In this document: piece by piece, positions 3,735-37,237 of the stretch
Layout: the number at the start of each line of letters is the position of its first letter
Position numbering within the stretch: the first letter of the stretch is position 1
Assembly (NCBI GenBank): GCA_977020255.1
Contig: CDROCS010005363.1
Location: 1 to 64,000, forward strand
Source: Obrimoposthia wandeli
Lineage: Eukaryota
DNA length: 64,000 nt
Direction: 5' to 3'
The notes under the pieces: model-generated
The model's input: only the letters and a program-made list of their open reading frames with translations
Database searches by the model: none
What the model was told of the DNA's origin: nothing
Position numbers and translations under genes: made by a program

Positions 3735-4520
3735 TCAAAGCTGATGTGCGGCTAATATCAGGGGCGTCGGTAATTGATTATTTTGTAAAATGGTAATCAC
3801 TTTATCGGTCGCTTGTCCTTCTGGAATGGGACCAATACGAATTTTATGCAAGCTACGCTTTTCATTACTGGTAACCGCTACCGGCCACTGCTGCATAGCT
3901 TGAAGTTTTTGCTGCAGTGCTTTGGCTGATTGTTCGTTACTTAATGCGGTGACTTGTAGCCATTTTTCAGGGCCTTTGGTCGGTGAGGAAATAACCTCCA
4001 TCGTGACCGCGGCGGTTCCTGCTTTATGAATGCCTAACTTAACGGCTGCGGAGTATGAAAGGTCAATGATGCGTCCTTCATGAAAAGGGCCTCGATCATT
4101 CACGCGTACTACAACAGATTCTTGGGTATCGGTGCGGGTGACTTTTACGTAGCTGGGCAGTGGTAGCGTTTTGTGCGCGGCGGTCATTTGATAAACGTCG
4201 TAGATTTCTCCATTGGACGTTGCATGGCCGTGAAACTTCATGCCATACCAAGAGGCAAAACCTGCTTGTTTGAACCCCGCGGCATGAGTCATTACTTCAT
4301 ACTCTTTGCCTAATACGGTATAGCGCTTTGGGTTGCCCATTGAGCTTAAAGGTTCAGTTTTTACTTCAGCATCTTTTAGTGCTGCAGGATCGAGAATGGG
4401 GTTGGGTATGAAGTCTTGGGAATGCTTATAACGTCCTGAGGTGCAGGCCGTTAGATTAATTATGCTAATCGCAAAAAGGCTGATCAGTGTGATCAGCCGA
4501 AAGGGTATGTTCATATTCAT
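3735..4520 (-). CDS. rlpA: Septal ring lytic transglycosylase RlpA lipoprotein with SPOR domain
   Basis: Lipobox LTAC, ASWYG, TAAHKTLP, VNDRGPF, IIDLSY; C-terminal SPOR-like domain. Confidence 0.95.
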   Translation of the reverse strand: MNMNIPFRLITLISLFAISIINLTACTSGRYKHSQDFIPNPILDPAALKDAEVKTEPLSSMGNPKRYTVLGKEYEVMTHAAGFKQAGFASWYGMKFHGHATSNGEIYDVYQMTAAHKTLPLPSYVKVTRTDTQESVVVRVNDRGPFHEGRIIDLSYSAAVKLGIHKAGTAAVTMEVISSPTKGPEKWLQVTALSNEQSAKALQQKLQAMQQWPVAVTSNEKRSLHKIRIGPIPEGQATDKVITILQNNQLPTPLILAAHQL

Positions 4521-4535
4521 GGGGTTATCAGTTTT

Positions 4536-5528
4536 CTACTTAATCGCTTGGCTTAGTTGATAAACGGCCATGGCGTACATGCGGCTATGATTATAGCGTG
4601 TGATCACGTAAAAGTTGTGATTACCCAGCCAAAACTCAGCGCCCTTTTCACCCATTAATTTTACCAAGGTTGCACTCGCGTCGTCGGCAACATCTTCCGT
4701 AGGACTAACACCCAGTGCTTTTAATTCACTCACCGTCCATTTTGGCTTCAAACGATCATTAACCGCGGCTTGATATTTATCGCCCGTAACACGAACTCGC
4801 TGAGTCACGGCTTGATCTTTTTTCCAGCCATGACGTTTAAAGTAGTTTGCAACACTGCCAATTGCGTCTGCTTTATTGGTCCACAAGTCTTTTAAACCAT
4901 CGTTATCATAATCAACGGCATAGGCACGATAACTACTAGGAATGAACTGTCCGTATCCCATTGCGCCGGCATACGATCCTTTTACTTCACTTGGGTTTAC
5001 GTGTTGTTCTTGGCTCATGACGAAGAAGTGCTTCAGCTCACGCCAAAATAATGAACGCTTTGGGTAATCGAACGCTAAGGTCGATAATGAATCTAATACT
5101 CGGTAGCTACCTTGGCGCTTGCCATAATATGTTTCGACGCCAATGATCGCACTGATGATTTCTTTCGGAACACCAAATTCTTTTTCGGCCTTTGCTAGCA
5201 GTTCAGCATTATCAATGATGAATTGCTTACCTTGTGTGATGCGTTTTTCGGTTAAGAAAATTTTGCGATAGTCAGCCCAAGTTTTGGTTTTTTCTGCTGG
5301 ACGAGAAATCGCTTTTAATACAGATTCTAACCGTACTGATTGCTCTAACCAGATTTTAGTTTGCGCGGGCTTGATGCCGTGTTCGGCTTCAAGCTGGCTG
5401 GCGAACTCTTCAAAACGTTCATGCTCTGCATAGTTGGCAGTGGCAGTATGGCTCGCGAATATGGAACAGCTGGCTAACAATAACGCTAATCCACTTTGTT
5501 TTGTTTTTTGCTTAATTCTGTTTATCAC
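4536..5528 (-). CDS. mltB: Lytic murein transglycosylase B
   Basis: IIGVETYYG, GSYAGAMGYGQFIPSSY, YNHSRMYAMAV motifs. Confidence 0.96.
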   Translation of the reverse strand: MINRIKQKTKQSGLALLLASCSIFASHTATANYAEHERFEEFASQLEAEHGIKPAQTKIWLEQSVRLESVLKAISRPAEKTKTWADYRKIFLTEKRITQGKQFIIDNAELLAKAEKEFGVPKEIISAIIGVETYYGKRQGSYRVLDSLSTLAFDYPKRSLFWRELKHFFVMSQEQHVNPSEVKGSYAGAMGYGQFIPSSYRAYAVDYDNDGLKDLWTNKADAIGSVANYFKRHGWKKDQAVTQRVRVTGDKYQAAVNDRLKPKWTVSELKALGVSPTEDVADDASATLVKLMGEKGAEFWLGNHNFYVITRYNHSRMYAMAVYQLSQAIK

Positions 5529-5680
5529 TCTGTTTTCCCTAAACTTGGTAACAATTATATAACGTAAAATTCTGTGAACATTGAAAAACTGTTTATATCT
5601 AAATACTGCGACTTAAGTTAAACCGAAAGCACTGACTTCTCTATTCGATTTACCCTTCTTTTCACTTGTAATATTCAATA

Positions 5681-6826
5681 CTATTTAAATTTATGAGTAT
5701 GCATCGACATCATGATGCCAAAACCTGCTAACAAACTGACTACCGATGTACCGCCCCAGCTTACCAGAGGCAATGGCACTCCGACCACTGGCAATAAGCC
5801 ACTTACCATACCTATATTCACAAAAACATAGATAAAGAAGGTTACGATTAAGCTACCTGATAATAAGCGACCAAATAACGATGGACAAACCGATGCGATA
5901 TATAAGCCACGCATCACAATTAAAAAGTACACGACTAATAATAACAGCACGCCAATAAGGCCTAATTCTTCGGCTAATACGGCAATAATAAAATCGGTAT
6001 GGCTCTCTGGTAGAAACTCTAATTGCGATTGAGTTCCCAGCATCCAGCCTTTTCCTTCAATTCCGCCAGAACCAATCGCTGTTTTTGATTGAATAATATT
6101 CCAACCAGATCCTAACGGGTCGCTCTCAGGATTTAAAAAAGTGAGGACTCGCTGCTTTTGATATCCGTGCATGACGAAGAACCACATCAGTGGCGCACAC
6201 GCGGCAACAATACTGACCATGGAAAATATTATCCACCAAGGCATGCCCGCAAAAAATAACACTAAAATACCCGAAGTGCCGATTAGGATAGACGTTCCCA
6301 GATCAGGTTGTTTTAAAATAAGCACCAGAGGAATGGCAATTAATACCATCGCTTTGGCTAAGGTAAATAATTTTGGCGGTGAGCCTTTGGTTGCCATGTA
6401 CCAGGCAATTAATAACGGTAGCGCTAATTTCATTAATTCTGAAGGCTGAAACCTTGGCAATCCTGGTATCGCTAACCAGCGTTGCGCACCCTTACCTGAA
6501 ACACCCAAGACTAATACTCCGATTAACGCGAGTACGCCGACGATATAGGCCCAAGGAGCCAGTATTTGATAAACCCGTGGCGGTATTTGTGCCGCCACCA
6601 GCAATACAATAAAACCGATCAGGTAATGTATGGCTTGTTTTTGCACCATCGCCGAGCCTTGGCCACTGGCGCTATACAGTATTAATAAGCCGCTTCCACA
6701 CAGCAATACTAATAATACAAATAAAGGTAAGTCGAGGTGAAAACGCGCAAACAATAACTGACTGCGTTTGTAGCCATCTTCATTCGTACCGCGATTCATT
6801 TGGCGACTAAAATCTGTTCCTGCCAT
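5681..6826 (-). CDS. rodA: Rod shape-determining protein RodA (SEDS glycosyltransferase)
   Basis: GAQRW, FQPSELMK, QPDLGT, LPESHTDF, LPLVSWGG motifs; multiple TM helices. Confidence 0.97.
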   Translation of the reverse strand: MAGTDFSRQMNRGTNEDGYKRSQLLFARFHLDLPLFVLLVLLCGSGLLILYSASGQGSAMVQKQAIHYLIGFIVLLVAAQIPPRVYQILAPWAYIVGVLALIGVLVLGVSGKGAQRWLAIPGLPRFQPSELMKLALPLLIAWYMATKGSPPKLFTLAKAMVLIAIPLVLILKQPDLGTSILIGTSGILVLFFAGMPWWIIFSMVSIVAACAPLMWFFVMHGYQKQRVLTFLNPESDPLGSGWNIIQSKTAIGSGGIEGKGWMLGTQSQLEFLPESHTDFIIAVLAEELGLIGVLLLLVVYFLIVMRGLYIASVCPSLFGRLLSGSLIVTFFIYVFVNIGMVSGLLPVVGVPLPLVSWGGTSVVSLLAGFGIMMSMHTHKFK

Positions 6827-8664
6827 TAGCCTTCTGCTCCTGACAGATATTCTTGCATGACCGCTTTCGCAATAGGGCCTGCAGTGCGCCCTGCCGATTC
6901 ACCGTTTTCGACAATCACTGCAATCGCGATGGTGGGATTTTCAACCGGTGCAAAAGCAACAAACAAGGCATGGTCTCGATTACGTTCCGCTAATGCTTCA
7001 GAATCGTATTCTTCATTTTGAGCAATACTCACAACCTGAGCCGTACCGGTTTTTGCGGCCATGGTGAAATTCAAATTTCGGCGAAGGCCCCGTGCGGTTC
7101 CTCTTGGTCCTGTGACAACGGCTTTCATAGCTTTGAACATTTTATCCCAGTTTTTTGGGTCTTTTAAAATGACATCATCCAGCGCTTTGCTATCGTCAAT
7201 TTCGGATTCTCCCGCTAAGGTATCCATTAAGCGGGGTGTATGCCACTTCCCTTTGGCCGCTAACATAGCGGTAGCCGTTGCTAGCTGCATAGGAGTGGTC
7301 AGCATGAAGCCCTGGCCAATACCCAAGTTTAACGTGTCTCCGGCATACCAAGAACGCCTGCGTTTTTTCTTTTTCCATTCACGATCCGGCAATAAACCGG
7401 ATAGCGCATTAGGCACGTCGTAGGTCATGTTTCGACCAAAGCCAAATTTCGCTAAGAAAGGAGATATATTATCCACCGTGGTTTTATAAGCGGCATCATA
7501 AAAATAGGTATCGCACGATTCCATTATTGCGGAGTGAAGATTGATGGTGCCGTGTCCTTTTCTTTTCCAATCTCGATAATAGCGCTCATCATTTTCAAGC
7601 TGATACCAACCTTCGTCTTCAATTTCATCTTGCCAAGTCACTGCATTGGCTTCTAAGAAAGACAAACCTAGAAACGGCTTTAGCGTTGATCCCGGTGGAT
7701 ATTGGCCTCGAATGGCTCGATTGAAAAGAGGTAAGTCTGGATTATTACGCAGCCCTGAATATTCTTTATGCGAAATACCGGTCACAAAGGAGTTAGGATT
7801 ATAACTGGGATTGCTGTACTGAGCTAAAATTCCGCCCGTCGCAACGTCGATCGCAACGACGGCACCTCGGTAGCCTTTCATCGCTATCGCGGAGGCTTGC
7901 TGTAATCGCTGATCGAGGTGTAAGACCAAGTCTTTACCTGGCACAGGATCAACTTGCTCGATCACTTGTAAAATTCGCCCACGGGCATTGGTCTCGACTT
8001 TTTGATAGCCCACTTGTCCGTGCAATTCGCTTTCGTAGCGGCGTTCAATTCCCAACTTACCCACATGTTTCGTCGCTCGGTATTGCTTCTTATCTAAGCG
8101 CTGGGCTTCTTTTTCGTTAATTCGCCCGACGTAACCTAATGCGTGTACGGAGGTCTCTGCTTCTGGGTAATGACGAACAAGTCGCGCTTCAACATCGATG
8201 CCTGGCAAATAAAATCGATTCACCATTACCTTCGCAATTTCTTTTTCATCCAATTTATATTTAACAACAATAGGCTCATAAGGACGACGACTGTATTTTA
8301 ATCGCTTACGGAATTGCTCTTCGTCACGCTCACTGATGTCTAATAATGTTCTGAGGTAAACGAGGGTTTCATCGAGATCATTAATTCGTTCTTTTACTAA
8401 GGTTAGGCTGTAGCTAGGAATATTTTCGGCCAGTAGAATGCCGTTACGATCGAAGATGAGGCCACGGGTAGGAGCTATGGGTCTTAATTGAATGCGGTTG
8501 TTTTCGGAGAGATCTTGATATTTTTCATGCTCTACAATTTGTAGAAAGGCGATGCGACTGCCCAGTACGCATAATAAGATGAAGATGAAGATCGTCATGA
8601 AGATGGCGCGACTGCGAAACAGCCTTTGCTCTGCCATTCTATCCCTGAACGAATTACCCCACAT
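6826..8664 (-). CDS. mrdA: Penicillin-binding protein 2
   Basis: RGLIFDRNG, PGSTLK (SxxK), SCD, KTGTAQ motifs; N-terminal TM; 1-nt overlap with rodA. Confidence 0.97.
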   Translation of the reverse strand: MWGNSFRDRMAEQRLFRSRAIFMTIFIFILLCVLGSRIAFLQIVEHEKYQDLSENNRIQLRPIAPTRGLIFDRNGILLAENIPSYSLTLVKERINDLDETLVYLRTLLDISERDEEQFRKRLKYSRRPYEPIVVKYKLDEKEIAKVMVNRFYLPGIDVEARLVRHYPEAETSVHALGYVGRINEKEAQRLDKKQYRATKHVGKLGIERRYESELHGQVGYQKVETNARGRILQVIEQVDPVPGKDLVLHLDQRLQQASAIAMKGYRGAVVAIDVATGGILAQYSNPSYNPNSFVTGISHKEYSGLRNNPDLPLFNRAIRGQYPPGSTLKPFLGLSFLEANAVTWQDEIEDEGWYQLENDERYYRDWKRKGHGTINLHSAIMESCDTYFYDAAYKTTVDNISPFLAKFGFGRNMTYDVPNALSGLLPDREWKKKKRRRSWYAGDTLNLGIGQGFMLTTPMQLATATAMLAAKGKWHTPRLMDTLAGESEIDDSKALDDVILKDPKNWDKMFKAMKAVVTGPRGTARGLRRNLNFTMAAKTGTAQVVSIAQNEEYDSEALAERNRDHALFVAFAPVENPTIAIAVIVENGESAGRTAGPIAKAVMQEYLSGAEG

Positions 8665-26934: not shown

Positions 26935-28836
26935 TTAACGAGGATCATACATCCATAATGTATTATTTTCTTGAAAGCCATCTTCACCTAAAAGAATACG
27001 GCCATCTTTCATGACGACAACGTTATCTGGCTGAGATAAGTTGTTTACATCACAACGCTCTGCGCCATCAAGTGAGCTGCGGTAAGTCGCGCCCATAATG
27101 ACTGGCTCGATACGAGTAAGGCTATAATCATTTTCGATTTTAGCGCGATAAACTCCACCGCAGTCTTTAATCCGACTGGATAGTTGCATATCACCTTCGT
27201 CATCAATCATCGTTTTATCTAGATCAGCAATAGCCATATACATATAGGCTGCAGTAACGGTTTCATCTGCAACCATATCAGCACCGGTTACGGCTTCTTT
27301 CACACGGTCTTGATGAATTGATATCCCTTCAAGCTTGCGCCATTCTGCAGTAGCCCCTAGCTGGCGGGCAGCTTGGCGAGATTCAAGGAAAGCTGAGCGA
27401 TCATCCATTGGCTGATCGGCAGTAATTTTACCACCTCCATTTGCCAGTGTTGGATACTTAGTACCTGCTGGGCGACCCGCGGTAACCCAAGCAGCCCACG
27501 CTTCAACATCCGCAACCGTCATATAGCTAGATTCACCAGCAACATACTGGTCCGTTCCAATGCCATCGAACTCATTAATCCAAACATCAATTTGAGTATT
27601 ATTACCCGCTGCTAATTCAACCCAAGTAACATCAAACCCTGTTACGGCTGGATCATTCAAACCTGCATCTTGCTGAAGCTTGGCTCCGAATAATGTACCG
27701 ACTGATAAATCTTCAGCCGTATCGGCTACAAACTTAAATAAGACTCCGCCGGTATCATCTTGTGATGCGTATACGGTTTTACCATCAGGCATAACGATTG
27801 AGTTTTCATGTTCATAACGACCGATAGTGAAATGCTTAACAGGTATAGGAGCTGCAGATTCTGGGTCTGTGATCTCTACGATATAACCATAATCATAAGG
27901 ATTGCTCGCATTACTTGATAGCGCCCACATACCTGCTAATAAAGCATCATCAGCAATTTGAGTAGGACTATTCCAACTAGGATTTGTTGTTGAATCAACT
28001 GAAGTATTAACAACCCATTCTTCTGAAGTTAAGGGGGTATTCCAAGGAGATACGGAACCAAAGCAATTGGCACCTGTACCATTAACAGCAGCGAAATCAA
28101 CCATCATTGCATCTAGAACGCCCCAATTACCTTGGGCATCTTTTTCAATATTCATGCGGCTCATACCACCTGGATATAACTCCCAGTTAGTAAATAGGTA
28201 ACCCTTACCAATACCTGTTGAAATAAAACCATTGAAATCAGGCATGTGATTTTCAAATATCTTAGTATCGCCTGCCAGGTTATAAATCGTACCTAACCCT
28301 TTTTCTAACTTACCTTCAAGGGTTGAAGCTGTTTGCCCCAACACTTTATATTGACCATAAGCTGTTTGAACTGTCTGACGTTCATAATCACTTTTAGGGA
28401 CAGGTAAATTAATCAGTGCCTTCGGTAAATTATTAAAATTAATTCCTTCTATAACACCTACTGTTCCTGTGTTATAGGCAACAGCATTGCCGTCAGTTTC
28501 AATATTACTATCAGCAGGGTGCTGGGCGTTGAAGAACAAATCGCCTCCTGCTGTTAAAAATATACCGGTAACCTCTGCACCCGCCGGCACTGTGGCAAGA
28601 CGAGTTAGACCTTCGATTGGATTGCCCATGGTTGATGCATCTTGCCCATCAGTACCATTAAGACCATCAGTACCATTAAGACCGACTAGTCCATCTATAC
28701 CAGAAGACCCTTCAGTACCATTGGTGCCAGGACTGCCATCATTACCATCCGAATCAGCGCCACAAGCCACTAACATAGAGGTTGTCATGGCTAGAAGCAC
28801 TGCCTTATGTAGAGCATTTTTCTTTAGGAGTTTCAT
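26935..28836 (-). CDS. phoX: PhoX-family (DUF839) alkaline phosphatase lipoprotein, circularly permuted, with collagen-like stalk
   Basis: Lipobox LVAC; motifs GAEVTG..FFNAQHP, NWE, NCFGSVSPWNTPLTSEE, GRYEHEN, YASQDD, RKLEG, QPDN, GED. Confidence 0.85.
   Translation of the reverse strand: MKLLKKNALHKAVLLAMTTSMLVACGADSDGNDGSPGTNGTEGSSGIDGLVGLNGTDGLNGTDGQDASTMGNPIEGLTRLATVPAGAEVTGIFLTAGGDLFFNAQHPADSNIETDGNAVAYNTGTVGVIEGINFNNLPKALINLPVPKSDYERQTVQTAYGQYKVLGQTASTLEGKLEKGLGTIYNLAGDTKIFENHMPDFNGFISTGIGKGYLFTNWELYPGGMSRMNIEKDAQGNWGVLDAMMVDFAAVNGTGANCFGSVSPWNTPLTSEEWVVNTSVDSTTNPSWNSPTQIADDALLAGMWALSSNASNPYDYGYIVEITDPESAAPIPVKHFTIGRYEHENSIVMPDGKTVYASQDDTGGVLFKFVADTAEDLSVGTLFGAKLQQDAGLNDPAVTGFDVTWVELAAGNNTQIDVWINEFDGIGTDQYVAGESSYMTVADVEAWAAWVTAGRPAGTKYPTLANGGGKITADQPMDDRSAFLESRQAARQLGATAEWRKLEGISIHQDRVKEAVTGADMVADETVTAAYMYMAIADLDKTMIDDEGDMQLSSRIKDCGGVYRAKIENDYSLTRIEPVIMGATYRSSLDGAERCDVNNLSQPDNVVVMKDGRILLGEDGFQENNTLWMYDPR
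28639..28746 (-). repeat. Collagen-like (Gly-X-Y)12 segment including an exact 18-bp tandem duplication
   Basis: GNDGSPGTNGTEGSSGIDGLVGLNGTDGLNGTDGQD; ccatcagtaccattaaga x2 at 28646-28681. Confidence 0.9.
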
Positions 28837-28897
28837 CACGATATCTCTCTCGATATTTTTTAATAAATCATTGGAGAGCACAGGCTAGGTTATAAAA

Positions 28898-28981: not shown

Positions 28982-29662
28982 TCAATAACGCCTTACAAAG
29001 ATGACAACCCTTCGGTTACTCTCGCGCTGTTGATCTAACGATGCGGTTTCTAATTTTTCTTTCGGTCGACTATCAGCATATCCGGCCGCTTTTAAGCGCT
29101 CTTTCTCAATCCCTTGAGCTAATAAGTATCTCACTACGTTCGTCGCTCGAGCTGAAGAAAGCTCCCAGTTAGAAGGAAATTTTTCAGTATGAATAGGCAC
29201 GTCATCAGTATGTCCTTCAACTTCAACCATATGTGTTTTATGGCTAGTCTCACGAATTACCTGAGTGACTTCTTTTAATGTTGAGATCGCATTTTGTTTA
29301 ATATCTGCAGAGCCAGACTGATAGAGTGCTACGTTAGCAAATTCAACCTTAACGCCTTTAGTATCTAAAGTAACGGAGACTTGATCTTGTAAATTATTTT
29401 GTTCAATTAATTCTTCTAGCCCATCTTTAATATCAGTGAAAGGCGTTGGTGGAGCTTCACCTGTCATCATTTCAGACAGCCCTTCCTTAAGTGCTTCAAC
29501 CTTGCCTTGATTTAAATCTGAAACAGAAAGAATCATGACGAAGAATGCCAGTAACAAGGTGATCGCATCAGAGTAAGTAATTAACCATGAGCTGGAAGCA
29601 TCCTCAAAATTAGGGCGGCGTCGTCTTAAGCTTCTGTGTTTATTTGATACGGACTCAGACAT
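28982..29662 (-). CDS. motB: MotB/PomB-family stator subunit with OmpA-like peptidoglycan-binding domain
   Basis: WLITYSDAITLLLAFFV TM with conserved Asp; EGHTD, SNWELSSARA, NRRV. Confidence 0.92.
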   Translation of the reverse strand: MSESVSNKHRSLRRRRPNFEDASSSWLITYSDAITLLLAFFVMILSVSDLNQGKVEALKEGLSEMMTGEAPPTPFTDIKDGLEELIEQNNLQDQVSVTLDTKGVKVEFANVALYQSGSADIKQNAISTLKEVTQVIRETSHKTHMVEVEGHTDDVPIHTEKFPSNWELSSARATNVVRYLLAQGIEKERLKAAGYADSRPKEKLETASLDQQRESNRRVVIFVRRY

Positions 29663-30465
29663 TAAAGATCTTCTTCTATCGGCTGATAACGCGCACTTGG
29701 CTTAAGATAAGCATTCAATCGATCTTGCATAAATAATGCATCTCGCTTCTCTGCTAATAATACAAAGCCTTCAACAATCATTTGATCACGGAAATATAAA
29801 GATTCTTGCTTTTCGGTTACCTGATTTGCCGCAGGTTTAAAAATAATATTCGCTAATACAACACCGTATAAAGTTGTAATTAATGCCAGTGCTAAGCCTT
29901 TACCAAGGGCGGCCATATCGCCATTCATATTATCCAACATAATAACCAAGCCAATAATGGTACCGACCATGCCAAAGCCAGGAGCATAAACCGCCATGGT
30001 ATTTAATACTTTTGATTCAATCGTCATTCGTTGCCAGAAGGCATCCATATCGTCTGTTAAAATAGTACGTATATCATGATTTTTATAACCACTGCTTAAC
30101 AACTCCATACCATGAGCTAAAAATGGATCTCTTCGTTCTTTTTCAGTTAAAGAAGACTCTAATCCTGCGATGCCCTGTTGACGATAAATCTGGCCCCACT
30201 CAATAAAGCGCTCTACATGTCCCCTTAAATATTTCGAACTCGTAGGCGCATGAAAAAAGGTATCAAATAGCGCTTTAATTGCTGTTAGAACATCCCTCGT
30301 TGTATAACTAATCAAAGAAGCTGCAAACGTACTACCAGCGACTAAAGCAAAACTGGATAAGCTAATAAACATTAGATAATTATTTGTGCTCGAAACTATT
30401 GCATAAATAAAGAGACTGATTGCAACGGTAATACCTACGAGCGTGCTAAACGAAAATCGATTCAT
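29662..30465 (-). CDS. motA: MotA/PomA-family stator subunit
   Basis: R-QQGIAGL-E torque pair, APGFGMVGTIIGL, ALITTLYG..LAN..FKP; 1-nt overlap with motB. Confidence 0.92.
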   Translation of the reverse strand: MNRFSFSTLVGITVAISLFIYAIVSSTNNYLMFISLSSFALVAGSTFAASLISYTTRDVLTAIKALFDTFFHAPTSSKYLRGHVERFIEWGQIYRQQGIAGLESSLTEKERRDPFLAHGMELLSSGYKNHDIRTILTDDMDAFWQRMTIESKVLNTMAVYAPGFGMVGTIIGLVIMLDNMNGDMAALGKGLALALITTLYGVVLANIIFKPAANQVTEKQESLYFRDQMIVEGFVLLAEKRDALFMQDRLNAYLKPSARYQPIEEDL

Positions 30466-30474
30466 ACTAGATCC

Positions 30475-32415
30475 TTAGCTTGGATTCGCAACAGCTATCA
30501 ATTCTTCCATGGAGAAACGGCCTGCTTTTAATACTTCACGCATTTTAGCAACCACTTGATTTCGAGCTTGTTCAGTTTGCTCTTGCGCGGCTTGGCCTTC
30601 TTGTATCTTTAATTCGGTAATAACAGAAGATCGTAATTTCACCGGTAATCCGCTTAATATATGTCGCTTAAATTCTGTTGCAGTATTGCATAAGGAAAGT
30701 GCCATCACGGTACGGTCTATATCTCTAAGCTCATTAGCAATAATACGTTCTGGCGTTCGCATTAAATCGGCATAAGTATAATAAACCTGTCGTAAACGAT
30801 AATAGGTTTCAGGCTTATCCGATTTTAAGGTTTTTAGTAGTCGAGTTTCTTCTCCGCTACTCATAGTATCTAGCATATTAATTAGTACCGACAAACCGTT
30901 CGCTGATACATTTTCAAAGCTCGGAACATTCAATGATTTTTGTGCAAGCCGATCAGCTACATCTTTAAACGTTGATACTGGAAGCGTCTCAAACTCGCCT
31001 AATTCATAAGCTACTGCGGATTGTTCATGCCCTTCTAATCGCTGAACTAAACCCGCACCTCTTTGCGCTGACATCTGTGAAAATACCAATGCTTTAATTC
31101 GAGTTTCTTCTTCCTTAATTAAATAAAGAACTTGGGAGTCATTTAATTTTTCCAAGAATGCAAACGGCGCATTACTACTGTCATCATCACCTAAAGCTTT
31201 TAACATTTCATGCCGAATATTATTTAAACTATTAATTCTTTGATCATCATCTAAAGGTTCTTGCTCTATTCGATTCGATAATGCTTCCGAATCAGCACTA
31301 GCAATTTTTGGACAAAGGCTACGAAACAACCCCTTTCCTAATACGTCATACAATGCAGCTACATTCTGACTGTTACCACTATTTAATTGTTCAGTAATAC
31401 GTTGCTGAAATAATTGCGGCTGCCCTAGCCCAATGGTTACCAATTCTTGTCGCATTTCATTCAACTGTCGGCGCTTATCATTAAAGCTATTATGCGAGGT
31501 ATCTTCAGAATTGCCGATAGCTGCCATTTCAACGGCTGCTGGCACAGTAAAGTTATCGAAATTATCACCTCTACGTTGATTCTCTTTTAGGCTATCACTT
31601 AAACGTTTATTGAATAAGTATAAGGCGAAGAGTAAAAGCAACATCATAAAGCCAAAACAGGCTAACATAATCCAGCCTTGGTATTGCTGCCACCAATCAA
31701 GTACTACATCGGTCTTTTCTTCTTTCTTGAATACAGTTCGTACGATTTTTAATGAATCACCTCGTAACTCATCTAACCGCGCTTTCCTAGTTATTAGGTT
31801 ACGAATAAACTCGACCTGCTGATCGCTTAAAATCTTGTCCAATACGATAGTAATCGTAAGTTTATTAATAGAATTTCGATAACCTAACGTTTTTTCTTTT
31901 ATCTTTTCTATTTGTTTTTCCGCTTCTTTACGTAATTTTTCCGCATAACCTAATGCTTGCTGACGCTCGTTTTCTAGCTGCTGAACTCGTCCTTTTAACG
32001 CGTTTACTTCTGCACTATTATCTTCAAAAATGGGTAAGTCACTGGTGGGAAGTCCCGGTAAAGTTTCTTCAACTTCTTTTGATCGATTACCAAACGATGC
32101 AGGAATTGGTTGAGAAGTGAAGATAGGCCTTTCAGGAATGCTATCTCTTCTTGAACTTGATTCTTCTTTAACAATCGTACGGGTTTTCTTTAACTCTGCT
32201 TCAACATGAATAATGAAACGATTATTACCTAGATACGCTTGTAAGTCCCGATTTAAGCGTGCTTCCATTTCATCTTTAAAGCGAACTTCTTCGATTTCAT
32301 CTTTTTTAGCCGGTACTTCAAATGTTTTTCCAGTCTCCGCATAGGTATTAACGGCTGGATAAATAACTGAACATATAAGGCACAGCTTGATGATACTTTT
32401 TATCAATAATTTCAT
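30475..32415 (-). CDS. FliF(ring-building motif 3)-TM-FliG fusion protein
   Basis: Signal peptide; RBM3-like halves (aa ~47-85 and ~183-229 with RGD); TM aa 248-268; FliG-like PFAFL, EEETRIKALVF, YYTYADL and C-terminal helix EQARNQVVAKMREVLKAGRF. Confidence 0.8.
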   Translation of the reverse strand: MKLLIKSIIKLCLICSVIYPAVNTYAETGKTFEVPAKKDEIEEVRFKDEMEARLNRDLQAYLGNNRFIIHVEAELKKTRTIVKEESSSRRDSIPERPIFTSQPIPASFGNRSKEVEETLPGLPTSDLPIFEDNSAEVNALKGRVQQLENERQQALGYAEKLRKEAEKQIEKIKEKTLGYRNSINKLTITIVLDKILSDQQVEFIRNLITRKARLDELRGDSLKIVRTVFKKEEKTDVVLDWWQQYQGWIMLACFGFMMLLLLFALYLFNKRLSDSLKENQRRGDNFDNFTVPAAVEMAAIGNSEDTSHNSFNDKRRQLNEMRQELVTIGLGQPQLFQQRITEQLNSGNSQNVAALYDVLGKGLFRSLCPKIASADSEALSNRIEQEPLDDDQRINSLNNIRHEMLKALGDDDSSNAPFAFLEKLNDSQVLYLIKEEETRIKALVFSQMSAQRGAGLVQRLEGHEQSAVAYELGEFETLPVSTFKDVADRLAQKSLNVPSFENVSANGLSVLINMLDTMSSGEETRLLKTLKSDKPETYYRLRQVYYTYADLMRTPERIIANELRDIDRTVMALSLCNTATEFKRHILSGLPVKLRSSVITELKIQEGQAAQEQTEQARNQVVAKMREVLKAGRFSMEELIAVANPS

Positions 32416-32427
32416 GTTTATTCCCCC

Positions 32428-33150
32428 CTACTTCAACCGTGCCAGACTGGTTTTAACTTGTTCCATATCAGGATCGATTACAAGTGCTTGCTGCCAGCTA
32501 GATTTCGCCTCAGCACTCAGTCCCATCTTATAATAAATACTGCCTTTTAAGGCATGTGCTTGAGCCGAATCAGGAACCAATTCGAGCGCTTTATTAGTTT
32601 CATCTAATGACTTCCAGTATTGTTTTTTATAGAACAAAGACTGGGCACTAAAAATATATTTAGTCGATGCTTGGAAGTCTTGAATTTTCTTTTGTTCAAC
32701 TAAGTCACTACGCTCATCAAACTCTTCATGATGCATCTCTGCTTTATCATCATTTAGACTAGCGAGCACTTGTTTATTTTTCTCTGCAATCTCTGCGGCA
32801 CTTTTTTGGAGAGTCTCTTGCATCGTACTGTGTTCAGTACCAGGAACTGCCGGTAACTTCATACTGAAGCTAACGTCACTATCACCCGCATCTAATGTCA
32901 TTAAGACATCAAATCCTGGTCCATAACGATGAATGTGCATGAGTCCATGATTCTTTTTCGCTAGGTCCGCCACTTGTTTACGTTTCTCTATTATTTCTAG
33001 AGAAATTTCTGCGCTTGCTTCTGTACTCTCTTCACCTATTCCCTGCAGGTCTGGTTGATCGCCACCATACTGGGTAAGGGTTCGATTTGTTCTTTCCATA
33101 GTGCAAGCACTAAGGAAAGAAACTAACAATACTACCATTAAATATTTCAT
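32428..33150 (-). CDS. TPR-containing lipoprotein
   Basis: Lipobox LSAC; C-terminal TPRs (ALELVPDSAQAHALKGSIYYKMG...WQQALVIDP). Confidence 0.85.
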   Translation of the reverse strand: MKYLMVVLLVSFLSACTMERTNRTLTQYGGDQPDLQGIGEESTEASAEISLEIIEKRKQVADLAKKNHGLMHIHRYGPGFDVLMTLDAGDSDVSFSMKLPAVPGTEHSTMQETLQKSAAEIAEKNKQVLASLNDDKAEMHHEEFDERSDLVEQKKIQDFQASTKYIFSAQSLFYKKQYWKSLDETNKALELVPDSAQAHALKGSIYYKMGLSAEAKSSWQQALVIDPDMEQVKTSLARLK

Positions 33151-34227: not shown

Positions 34228-34326
34228 TCCCTAACCTTGACATCTTTTCTAGATTCCTCATGTCAGCATAGTTCAGATATGCAGGTTAGATGAAACTTTG
34301 CTATGCTTTTTTGTAATGGAGTACTT

Positions 34327-34674
34327 ATGAAATCAATGATTCAACTAGCTTTTCTATTTCTATTCAGTCAATTAGTAAGTCAGCCCCTTTTTGCTGAAGA
34401 GAATAAAGTAAAGAATAATCTAAAGATCATTTCTCTCTATCAGATTGAAGATGATACAAATGCAGGGTTTGACTTTTTCACGTCACAAAAAATACATAAA
34501 TGCGGTGGTAAACTGTCCAATCGCTTTCGATCTTATAGCGATCATAAAGCTGTCGCTGAACGAAAGTTCAAGATCGCACTAGCAGCATTAAATTTTCAGT
34601 ATAAAGTGAGTATAAAGTCCTTGGGCTGTGAAGGCCGCTCAATGCTAATCGACCACATTGGCATCAGCCTATAA
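34327..34674 (+). CDS. Small secreted hypothetical protein
   Basis: Signal peptide (..SQPLFA), two Cys; divergent from the motor operon. Confidence 0.7.
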   Translation: MKSMIQLAFLFLFSQLVSQPLFAEENKVKNNLKIISLYQIEDDTNAGFDFFTSQKIHKCGGKLSNRFRSYSDHKAVAERKFKIALAALNFQYKVSIKSLGCEGRSMLIDHIGISL

Positions 34675-34804: not shown

Positions 34805-36331
34805 TTAATCAATTTGCTTAGCAGCAATTTTAGCTTTCCATTCTTGCGGGCCAGTGATGTGCACTGAAGAACCACGACAATCTACGGCAACCGTTACGGG
34901 CATATCAACAACGTCAAATTCGTAGATCGCTTCCATACCTAAGTCAGCAAAACCAACAACTTCAGCGCCTTTAATCGCTTGTGATACTAAGTAAGCAGCA
35001 CCACCCACAGCCATTAAATAAACCGCTTCGTTATCACGAATCGCTTCAATCGCCATTGGGCCACGCTCGGCTTTACCGATCATGCCTAAAAGGCCAGTTT
35101 CTTCTAATACTGTACGAGTAAACTTATCCATACGGGTCGCCGTTGTAGGGCCTGCAGGACCGACTACTTCGTCACGTACTGGGTCAACAGGACCTACGTA
35201 ATAGATAAAACGGCCTTTTAGATCAACCGGCAATTCTTCGCCGTTATTGATCATATCAACCATGCGCTTGTGCGCCGCATCACGACCAGTAAGCATTTTG
35301 CCGGACAATAATACGGTTTCACCGGGTAGCCAATCTTTAACCATCTCAGGAGTGACTTCGTTCAGATTAACGCGACGAACACCTTCACCCACTTCCCAAG
35401 TAATGTCAGGCCAGTCTTCGATTTTAGGCACGGGCAATACGGCTGGACCGGAACCGTCTAATTCGAAATGAACGTGGCGAGTAGCCGCACAGTTTGGAAT
35501 AATGGCAACCGGCTTGTTGGCAGCATGTGTCGGGAAATCGGCTACTTTAATATCAACAACCGTAGTAAGACCGCCAAGGCCTTGTGCGCCGATACCTAGT
35601 TTGTTCACTTTATCGAACAATTCTAGACGCAGCTCTTCCGCACGAGTTTGTGCGCCACGAGCTTGTAGCTCTTGAATATTAACCGGCTCTAATAATGATT
35701 CTTTAGCGATCATCATCGCTTTTTCAGCCGTACCGCCGATGCCTATACCAAGCATGCCTGGTGGACACCAACCAGCACCCATTTTTGGAATTTGCTCTAA
35801 TACCCAATCAACAACAGAATCCGAAGGGTTCAACATAGCAAATTTAGACTTGGCTTCTGAACCGCCGCCTTTTGCCGCAACGTGAACGTCTACGGTATTA
35901 CCCTGAACTAATTTAACGTGGACAATCGCTGGGGTATTATCTTTAGTATTGCTACGCGCGCCATCAGGATCAGCCAAAATAGAAGCACGTAATACGTTAT
36001 CTGGATTCAGATAAGCGCGACGAACACCTTCGTTGGCGATGTCTTCGATATTCATCGTGGCATCTTCAAAACGCACATCCATGCCGATTTCTAAAAATAC
36101 GGTAACAATACCGGTATCTTGGCAAATTGGACGGTGGCCTTGGGCACACATACGAGAGTTAATCAGAATCTGAGCCATGGCATCTTTAGCCGCTTTCGAT
36201 TCTTCTTTTAGATAGGCTTCATGAACAGCGTCGATGAAATCTTTTGGGTGATAATACGAAATATATTGCAGTGCGTCCGCGATGCTCTCGATCAGATCAT
36301 CTTGGCGAACAACTGTGACGGCATTAGCCAT
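34805..36331 (-). CDS. fumA: Fumarate hydratase class I (Fe-S)
   Basis: RPICQDTG, KGGGSE, GAGWCPPG, AIIPNCAATRH, GPTTATRMD. Confidence 0.95.
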   Translation of the reverse strand: MANAVTVVRQDDLIESIADALQYISYYHPKDFIDAVHEAYLKEESKAAKDAMAQILINSRMCAQGHRPICQDTGIVTVFLEIGMDVRFEDATMNIEDIANEGVRRAYLNPDNVLRASILADPDGARSNTKDNTPAIVHVKLVQGNTVDVHVAAKGGGSEAKSKFAMLNPSDSVVDWVLEQIPKMGAGWCPPGMLGIGIGGTAEKAMMIAKESLLEPVNIQELQARGAQTRAEELRLELFDKVNKLGIGAQGLGGLTTVVDIKVADFPTHAANKPVAIIPNCAATRHVHFELDGSGPAVLPVPKIEDWPDITWEVGEGVRRVNLNEVTPEMVKDWLPGETVLLSGKMLTGRDAAHKRMVDMINNGEELPVDLKGRFIYYVGPVDPVRDEVVGPAGPTTATRMDKFTRTVLEETGLLGMIGKAERGPMAIEAIRDNEAVYLMAVGGAAYLVSQAIKGAEVVGFADLGMEAIYEFDVVDMPVTVAVDCRGSSVHITGPQEWKAKIAAKQID

Positions 36332-36544: not shown

Positions 36545-37237
36545 CTAAAAAGGACTCCAGCTTTTAGTTCCCTCAGACGCTTCATTTTCAGCGCTATCCG
36601 AAGCATTACTTTCGTCTTTGTCGCTTTTTGTTGAAGAGGCCAATTTAACTTTTTCCGCAACGACAGGAATTGCAGATATTAATCCTCGGCCTTCATCCAA
36701 CATATTTGTTTGCTGAATTTCAGTAAGTGCCACATCGGGTGTAACGACTTGCAAAGGATTTTTATGAAAGGTCATGTCAGCAAATTTAGCGGCATCTTTA
36801 TCGACTTCCGAATAGCGTAAATAGTAAACATTACCGGCCTGCGCATTCAATTGCAGCTCAGTCACCATTTTAAGGGTGAAATCTACAACATCATGTACGT
36901 GAATGCCTTCTAGTCCGCCTAAAGGGCGGCGAATTTTCACATCATGATTGCCCGGCTTTAATTCATACCAGGTGTAACCATTGCCTTTAATGTTGAACAG
37001 ACGCTCATCATTTAAATAAAAGCTTGGCGCTTCTAGCTCGTCATTCGCCCAAGTCGAAGCTGGGCGATAAACATAGATTAAAGCCGTATGTTCGTAATCC
37101 CAACGATAACCTACAGGCTGAAAATCCTGTCCATTAGGTGCTGAAACAAAGCTTCCGAAATTGTGTCCAATAGACTGGTAAATTGTGCAGCTCGGTAGCA
37201 TTAAAACCGATAGCAGCAATAATCCGATTCTTATCAT
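36545..37237 (-). CDS. DUF2846-like lipoprotein
   Basis: Lipobox LPSC; ALIYVYRP...GYTWYELKPG...GNVYYLR pattern. Confidence 0.75.
   Translation of the reverse strand: MIRIGLLLLSVLMLPSCTIYQSIGHNFGSFVSAPNGQDFQPVGYRWDYEHTALIYVYRPASTWANDELEAPSFYLNDERLFNIKGNGYTWYELKPGNHDVKIRRPLGGLEGIHVHDVVDFTLKMVTELQLNAQAGNVYYLRYSEVDKDAAKFADMTFHKNPLQVVTPDVALTEIQQTNMLDEGRGLISAIPVVAEKVKLASSTKSDKDESNASDSAENEASEGTKSWSPF

Follow-up and report, generated by a model that had tools for sequence, protein, structure and literature searches.

A natural single-chain FliF(RBM3)-FliG protein encoded in a conserved operon with MotAB and two outer-membrane proteins

A FliF-FliG fusion gene lies within a five-gene operon

We analyzed a 64,000-nucleotide stretch of DNA (contig CDROCS010005363.1, positions 1 to 64,000 of the forward strand, from GenBank assembly GCA_977020255.1, filed under Obrimoposthia wandeli; hereafter the window), in which the locus described here belongs to an Oleispira-like marine bacterium. 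Its minus strand carries an open reading frame (ORF) with an ATG start, and the product of 646 amino acids (aa) was confirmed to join in one chain a predicted signal peptide, ring-building motif 3 (RBM3) of FliF, a single transmembrane (TM) helix and a complete FliG with its N-terminal, middle and C-terminal domains (FliG-N, FliG-M and FliG-C; coordinates of all features are collected in Table 1). This fusion gene is the third of a minus-strand operon that encodes, in order, an outer-membrane protein, a tetratricopeptide-repeat (TPR) lipoprotein, the fusion, MotA and MotB. The operon genes lie 9–12 bases apart, except that the motA stop and the motB start codon share one base, and a Shine-Dalgarno-like sequence precedes each of the first four genes. 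Upstream of the operon, after the fumarase gene, we found a terminator-like hairpin. A scan with the sigma-70-type consensus returned fewer promoter-like sites than in shuffled sequence and none in the 75-base gap upstream of the operon, and no convincing sigma-28 match was seen by eye. The flanks are housekeeping genes, with no axial genes near the operon, and no FliM, FliN, FliPQR or FlhAB gene was present around it or in the relative loci examined. This conserved five-gene operon, with its MotAB pair and two outer-membrane proteins, is the decisive context of the fusion.

Domain composition and predicted fold of the fusion

The single-chain order of signal peptide, RBM3, one TM helix, FliF-tail-like segment and FliG N, M and C domains had been proposed in a first-pass annotation of the window, and Pfam, hhalign, AlphaFold2 (AF2) and Foldseek all agreed with it. 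Pfam YscJ_FliF_C matched aa 58–229 over the entire model (positions 1–147; E = 1e-7; 33 bits against a cut-off of 23.8), and FliG_M (aa 427–497; E = 2e-10) and FliG_C (aa 529–635; E = 7e-14) both scored above their curated cut-offs. The possibility that the cytoplasmic half fits MgtE_N better than FliG was rejected, since MgtE_N gave no match at E ≤ 0.01, against the significant FliG_M and FliG_C hits. The RBM1/RBM2 model YscJ_FliF likewise found nothing in the fusion at E ≤ 0.01, and merely ~13 residues separate the signal peptide from the first RBM3 helix, so the earlier reading that RBM1 and RBM2 are lacking stands. At the extreme N-terminus, a hydrophobic stretch followed by a small-x-small motif (TYA) resembles a cleavable signal peptide, and several diverse relatives look alike in this respect. 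The helix at aa 248–268 stands for TM2 of FliF.

Against the Protein Data Bank (PDB), phmmer aligned the cytoplasmic half to Aquifex FliG (3hjl; E = 3e-13) and also to Thermotoga FliG, and aligned aa 43–277 to residues 234–485 of Salmonella FliF (6scn). A family profile of 141 members, compared by hhalign, covered residues 5–323 of the 331 of E. coli FliG (probability 99.2; E = 3e-19), which shows that the FliG N domain is present; within this alignment, aa 347–408 of the fusion fell on residues 5–84 of E. coli FliG. The same profile aligned to residues 374–432 of E. coli FliF, including its RGD motif (probability 91.6). In the FliG-C part, G507 occupies the position of the Gly-Gly linker and YYTY (545–548) that of MFxF.

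An AF2 model of the fusion built on the 141-member alignment had a mean predicted local distance difference test score (pLDDT) of 86. The periplasmic part of the model comprises an alpha helix (40–62), a beta segment (68–83), a disordered stretch (84–133, with pLDDT below 50 at aa 108–129), a 38-residue helix (134–171), a second beta segment (174–193), an alpha helix (198–212) and a final strand (221–227). As modeled, this is the alpha-beta-beta-alpha-beta fold of an RBM, interrupted at the site of the FliF collar by an insertion. After RBM3 the model shows a long TM helix, a disordered linker (281–305) and an all-helical cytoplasmic half. Foldseek matched the model to full-length FliG in the PDB (3hjl; ~315 columns; E = 1e-10), to FliG of Salmonella C-ring structures, and to some twenty S-ring chains of FliF (E ~4e-4), in keeping with the RBM fold that had been expected at aa 47–229. 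The FliG-C domain superposed at a root-mean-square deviation of 1.5–1.7 Å on 1qc7 and also on 8ucs_H, a FliG-C bound to the MotAB stator.

The fusion is nevertheless neither a FliF orthologue nor a FliG orthologue, although it holds homologous domains of both. It is not the former because RBM1 and RBM2 are absent, and not the latter because it scores 52.4 bits against the FliG equivalog TIGR00207 (cut-off 226.7; E. coli FliG, 507) and lacks the EHPQR motif described below.

Outer-membrane and stator proteins encoded in the operon

The first gene encodes a secreted protein with two predicted parts, an N-terminal alpha/beta domain (aa ~40–182) and a C-terminal 8-stranded beta-barrel ending in GMRF. 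Foldseek related the barrel to those of OmpA, OmpX, NspA, Ail and OmpW, and the N domain to LpoB-C, TolB-N, PelC and FlgT (3w1e). Homologues stand at the same operon position in three distant loci, namely L011 (full-length; 33% identity; E = 1e-67), L012 and L014, and a close homologue is present in Oleispira antarctica RB-8. The periplasmic domain also bears a CxxC motif (aa 108–111), of which C108 is invariant and C111 occurs in at least 90% of homologues; a structural disulfide or a metal site would be possible roles. In the product of the second gene, the TPR repeats are confined to aa ~160–239, and NCBIfam models indicate weak similarity to TPR lipoproteins of the PilW, Tgl and NlpI type. 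A TPR gene adjoins the fusion in L010, L011, L012, L013 and L014, on contig P0178 and, beside an unfused form, in L017.

The fourth gene product gave its best NCBIfam scores to MotP, PomA and MotA (MotP, 166 bits against a cut-off of 394) and matched MotA (8ucs and 6ysf) and PomA structures in the PDB. The E. coli MotA residues R90, E98, P173 and P222 correspond to R95, E103, P162 and P211 of this protein. In the fifth, Asp32 aligned with D32 of E. coli MotB and was invariant in five sequences.

Stator- and FliM-facing residues are partly retained

Alignment to E. coli FliG placed K593 at R281, T600/E601 at D288/D289, an alanine at R297 and C576 at K264, so that the charges of the torque helix are kept in part, as first noted from the sequence. 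Of the 141 family members, 123 have Arg or Lys at position 593. Only the glutamate of the FliM-binding EHPQR motif persists (E436; 132 of 141 sequences); the positions after it read E, T and R here and vary in the family, and by this alignment the motif is lost from the fusion. The first-pass annotation had suggested a re-tuned stator interface; because the dedicated MotA keeps the equivalents of canonical R90 and E98, this interface looks reduced rather than redesigned.

The module is conserved, under purifying selection and occurs in fused and unfused forms

Close homologues of the fusion (96–37% identity) were found in Oleispira, Thalassolituus and Bermanella. In nine Oleispira and Thalassolituus genomes the five genes sit between fumarase and ppnN, with reading frames intact in every one. 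Compared with the closest genome (L001), the ratio of nonsynonymous to synonymous substitution rates (dN/dS) was 0.02–0.06 for all five operon genes, and the module is thus under purifying selection. Within the fusion, dN against L001 was lowest in FliG-C (0.015) and, save for the signal peptide, highest in the cytoplasmic linker. The near-invariant columns of the 141-sequence alignment were L119-P120-G121 (each conserved in at least 90% of sequences), G219-D220, F418/F420 (PFxFL), Q428, E436 and G507. From the LPGLP motif to beta2 the distance ranges from 15 to 93 residues across the family, the helix being highly variable in length, and the conserved feature of the insertion is therefore LPGLP rather than the coiled coil. 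In an E-INS-i alignment, LPGLP fell opposite GVPGAL in the collar region of E. coli FliF, which suggests that the insertion may be a reduced collar loop.

At greater distance, a HMMER scan of 1.8 billion representative sequences returned 273 clusters at E < 1e-10; the best 150 of these 273 were mostly 550–720 aa long, with matches spanning RBM3 to FliG-C. A homologue search seeded with the 141-sequence alignment recovered the same close relatives and no added taxa. The module is retained in the distant members L014 (40% identity), L010 (25%) and L011 (21%), in the order unassigned or outer-membrane protein, TPR protein, fusion, MotA and MotB, and contig P0178 carries the same five genes in altered order. 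ESM Atlas clusters nearest the query had the same Pfam set, and their labels span Pseudomonadota, Balneolota, Bdellovibrionota, Elusimicrobiota, Bacteroidota and Thermodesulfobacteriota, with few members per label, which makes them weak indicators.

Two loci carry the rotor parts as separate proteins, downstream of MotA/MotB and TPR genes. On NCBI contig P0175, MotB is followed by a 382-aa protein with YscJ_FliF_C only and then by a 310-aa protein with FliG N, M and C domains, with start/stop overlap. In L017, three TPR proteins, MotA and MotB come first, and at 4109–6930 a protein of 630 aa and a FliG-like one of 309 aa follow. The larger of the two combines RBM3, a 'PGFPG' motif and RGD with a periplasmic coiled coil of roughly 200 residues, one TM helix and a FliF-like C-terminal tail (...SSIVKDWLQ); segment aa 308–345 of the fusion probably represents this FliF C-tail. 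The stand-alone FliG-like proteins of the unfused versions scored 86–158 bits against the same FliG equivalog. In addition, L010 (12108–13517) and L012 (7303–8715) each have an outer-membrane barrel of the TraF_2/PorP-SprF type (~470 aa) immediately next to the module, a hint that some lineages use one more outer-membrane component.

These data bear on two explanations that would tie the locus to an existing or former flagellum. That it is left over from a flagellar gene cluster, in decay and functionless today, is highly improbable: such a reading can point to the loss of RBM1/RBM2, of EHPQR and of some torque-helix charges, and to scores under the equivalog cut-offs, but the selection and conservation data contradict it, with frames intact in all nine close relatives, low dN/dS in all five genes and a module conserved at 20–40% protein identity over distant lineages, and the fold is predicted with high confidence. 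That the proteins serve the host flagellar motor, by supplying an alternative or additional rotor subunit, by keeping stators in reserve or by acting as a brake, is somewhat less far-fetched, though still improbable. Every part is homologous to flagellar proteins, and the weak FlgT_M similarity of the first gene product recalls Vibrio H-ring proteins. However, the operon is flanked by fumarase and housekeeping genes and lies apart from flagellar clusters; with neither RBM1/RBM2 nor the FliM-binding motif, the protein could not stand in for FliF or FliG in a motor that secretes and switches; and the same self-contained module recurs in very distant lineages, some of whose Atlas labels (Bacteroidota, Elusimicrobiota) name phyla mostly without flagella, a weak point in itself.

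A proposed ion-driven rotary module

We favor, with a probability of about 0.6, the reading that the fusion serves as rotor in a small, ion-driven rotary module, one that works independently of the flagellum and is coupled to the outer membrane. For ring formation, rotation, the partners of LPGLP and the cellular function we infer the following scheme. Export of the N-terminus would set the protein in the inner membrane, its FliF-type RBM3 facing the periplasm and its complete FliG the cytoplasm. The RBM3 domains may assemble into a ring as in FliF and SpoIIIAG, in line with the proposal of the first-pass annotation, and the ring would then carry one covalently linked FliG per subunit below the membrane. 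The presumably co-transcribed MotA/MotB would be held to peptidoglycan by the OmpA-like domain, and ions passing via Asp32 would drive the stator to push the torque helix of FliG-C through the kept charge pairs (MotA E103 with FliG K593, and MotA R95 with FliG E601). Lacking RBM1/RBM2, an export gate, a rod and the FliM/FliN-binding motif, such a ring should be unable to secrete or to switch as a flagellar motor does. The insertion in place of the collar, comprising LPGLP and the variable coiled coil, is the probable output on the periplasmic side; it may engage the TPR lipoprotein and the outer-membrane barrel protein and so couple ion flow at the inner membrane to a process at the outer membrane.

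Several points weigh against this scheme. It leaves unexplained how FliG would be placed at a radius that the stator can reach without FliM and FliN. The acidic pair D288/D289 is down to one Glu in the fusion and is variable family-wide, and in the alignment equivalents of K264 and R297 are absent. MotA, MotB and the FliG part all fall under their NCBIfam equivalog cut-offs. Lastly, no MotAB genes lie beside the fusion in L012 and L013, both of which are short contigs.

Some of the same features suit a force transducer without a freely turning ring, in which the MotAB-like unit acts on the FliG of a single or few copies and the Pro-rich segment relays conformational work to partners at the outer membrane, much as ExbBD-TonB or TolQR-TolA does. 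The single-pass topology, the Pro-rich and partly disordered periplasmic stretch with its one short near-invariant motif, the outer-membrane partners encoded in the operon, the extra TraF_2/PorP-like barrels adjoining the module in L010 and L012, and a torque-helix charge variability that suggests a looser interface would all fit such a device. We nonetheless consider it unlikely, if the most credible of the alternatives: the domain in the periplasm is a ring-building RBM3 with the RGD segment of FliF preserved, the MotA is of the flagellar type with R90 and E98 equivalents present, and its contact would be cytoplasmic, through FliG-C (the interface of flagellar rotation), and not through the membrane as with TonB.

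Neighborhood beyond the operon

Downstream of motB lies a PhoX-type phosphatase gene whose product has a short collagen-like Gly-X-Y stretch near its N-terminus. A PhoX-type gene occurs in most of the Oleispira relatives (27–28% identical in L004 and L007) and is absent from L008 and from the distant loci. PhoX and the products p542 and p231 were considered as parts of the module and rejected, since in L008 motB runs straight to ppnN and the distant loci do without them. A divergent 123-aa ORF upstream of the operon is kept in 8 of 9 close relatives (38–82% identity) and gave no Pfam match; L014 has a 134-aa ORF at the matching position. A gene for a DUF2846 protein lies upstream of fumarase, and the order DUF2846, fumarase, module recurs in L014, a Bermanella-like locus, so that the wider neighborhood is syntenic over a long evolutionary distance. 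Fumarase had a synonymous divergence (dS) of 0.22 against L001, versus 0.9–2.5 for the rest of the syntenic block, possibly through a codon-usage constraint or a recent recombination tract. An elevated dS special to the operon was rejected, as PpnN, PhoX and two genes beyond show that fumarase is the outlier.

Table 1. Positions in the window of the operon genes, of the parts of the fusion protein and of neighboring genes
Feature	Position	Strand	Evidence
Gene 1, secreted outer-membrane protein, 355 aa	33160..34227	-	AF2 (pLDDT 81), Foldseek, weak Pfam FlgT_M match
Gene 2, TPR lipoprotein, 240 aa, lipobox LSAC, Thr at +2	32428..33150	-	Pfam TPR_1, TPR_2, TPR_11
Gene 3, fusion, FliF(RBM3)-TM-FliG(N/M/C) in a single chain	30475..32415	-	Pfam, phmmer, AF2, Foldseek, hhalign
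Fusion: predicted signal peptide, aa 1–26 (...NTYA, then ETGK)	32338..32415	-	Read from sequence, predicted
Fusion: RBM3 first half (alpha1, beta1), aa 40–83	32167..32298	-	AF2, Pfam YscJ_FliF_C, Foldseek S-ring FliF chains
Fusion: insertion at FliF beta-collar position, Pro-rich disordered stretch and helix, aa 84–173	31897..32166	-	AF2
Fusion: LPGLP motif, near-invariant, aa 119–123	32047-32061	-	Alignment of 141 sequences
Fusion: RBM3 second half (beta2, alpha2, beta3), aa 174–229, RGD = R218/G219/D220	31729..31896	-	hhalign
Fusion: single TM helix, aa 248–268	31612..31674	-	Hydrophobic stretch inside continuous model helix 237–282
Fusion: FliF-C-tail-like helices, aa 308–345 (with GQPQLFQQRITEQL), then FliG-N-like domain, aa 347–410; together aa 308–410	31186..31494	-	hhalign, Foldseek
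Fusion: FliG middle domain, aa 416–497, with PFxFL and Q428	30925..31170	-	Pfam FliG_M, column counts, alignments to 3hjl and E. coli FliG
Fusion: FliG C-terminal domain, aa 507–646	30478..30897	-	Pfam FliG_C, Foldseek
Fusion: torque helix, aa ~590–605 (K593, E601)	30601-30648	-	Alignment
Gene 4, MotA-type stator A subunit, 267 aa, short PomA/MotP-like type	29662..30465	-	Pfam MotA_ExbB
Gene 5, MotB-type stator B subunit, 226 aa: TM helix with Asp32, plug, OmpA-like peptidoglycan-binding domain	28982..29662	-	Pfam MotB_plug, OmpA
PhoX-type phosphatase	26935-28881	-	
123-aa ORF	34303-34674	+	
Fumarase	34805-36331	-	
DUF2846 protein	36545-37237	-	

Comparison with known systems

In the flagellum, the machine to which FliG and the MS-ring are known to belong, a type III export gate surrounded by RBM1 and RBM2 of FliF forms the center of the rotor. 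The likeness of the present proteins to flagellar FliF/FliG and MotAB/PomAB extends to RBM3 with its RGD, to the N, M and C domains of FliG with PFxFL, the linker Gly, an aromatic hinge resembling MFxF and a torque helix that is basic at the site of R281, and to a stator with Asp32, plug and OmpA-like domain in MotB and equivalents of R90, E98, P173 and P222 in MotA. The differences are equally clear. One polypeptide here takes the place of two, a cleavable-looking signal peptide that of TM1, and predicted disorder with a long helix that of the beta-collar; without RBM1/RBM2 there is no housing for an export gate; and in place of EHPQR, FliM/FliN and genes for rod, hook or filament, the operon offers an outer-membrane barrel protein and a TPR lipoprotein.

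Other 5:2 ion motors (ExbBD-TonB, TolQR-TolA, GldLM/PorLM, AglRQS and ZorAB) resemble the proposed module as members of the MotAB family put to a non-swimming, outer-membrane-linked task. To our knowledge none of these drives FliG or an RBM ring, and the A subunit here is flagellar (PomA/MotP-like) instead of being of the ExbB/TolQ type. The H- and T-ring proteins of Vibrio (FlgT, FlgO, FlgP, MotX and MotY) share an outer-membrane-proximal LpoB/TolB-N/FlgT-M-like fold and a repeat protein in a scaffold for a PomAB-type stator. This likeness is at the level of fold only; the gene 1 domain is joined to an OmpA-like barrel, and the TPR protein matches TPR rather than Sel1 models.

SpoIIIAG and other RBM3-only ring proteins likewise carry an insertion that splits the RBM between beta1 and beta2, and can form large rings without RBM1/2 (PMC4768692), whereas SpoIIIAG has neither a cytoplasmic FliG nor a stator. 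SpoIIIAG was not among the top 50 Foldseek matches of the fusion, whereas FliF chains were. Engineered fusions of Salmonella FliF and FliG are reported still to permit flagellar assembly and rotation (Francis 1992; Thomas 2001; as recounted in PMC4768692), and an engineered Vibrio FliF-FliG fusion is described as forming rings (PMC10941966, PMC11481574), so a single-chain rotor is physically workable. Like the fusion described here, these link an MS-ring protein covalently and 1:1 with FliG; they differ in containing full-length FliF inside a complete flagellar system, while the natural fusion is RBM3-only and lies in a non-flagellar operon.

A natural FliF-FliG fusion had been mentioned for non-motile Chlorobi in the first-pass annotation. 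The literature searched gave no support for it, and the natural fusion that we found described is that of Chlamydiaceae, a protein of ~330 aa with a signal sequence, two TM helices, RBM2 and an RBM-like domain of unassigned type, in which the FliG-related part is limited to a FliG-M-like region; it is discussed as a possible injectisome partner, with no MotAB described alongside (Bergeron 2016, PMC4768692). It shares with the present protein a natural origin and a shortened FliF joined to FliG-like sequence with no full flagellum around it, and differs from our 646-aa protein, which has RBM3 only and FliG N, M and C domains. A 2025 survey of MotAB and its non-flagellar relatives describes no FliG-linked non-flagellar stator (PMC12505986). 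We found no published description of the fusion family or of the operon, in full-text searches that covered few of the subscription journals, and 'undescribed' is accordingly provisional. Taken together, the best reading of the module is a flagellar-type rotor-stator pair in a non-flagellar, outer-membrane-linked setting. It may further exemplify an undescribed, widespread class of non-flagellar rotary machine, in which a minimal FliF(RBM3)-FliG ring, fused or split, works with dedicated MotAB and outer-membrane proteins, a generalization to which we give a little less than even odds.

Implications

The rotor core of the flagellar motor appears here as a self-contained, conserved module, with a flagellar-type stator of its own and outer-membrane partners but no export gate, rod or switch, in fused and unfused form and in distant lineages. 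If our interpretation is correct, the ion-driven 5:2 motors would gain a new output as a family, and flagellar-type torque generation would serve a task in the envelope other than the turning of a filament. The module would also be a naturally minimal rotor-stator pair, made of one rotor protein and two stator proteins without FliM or FliN, and as such attractive for structural and single-molecule work on torque; experiments are feasible because the host genus has cultivated strains and O. antarctica RB-8 possesses the gene 1 homologue. Finally, it would mean that the rotor-stator core can exist without a type III export apparatus, and a modular origin of the flagellar motor would become testable.

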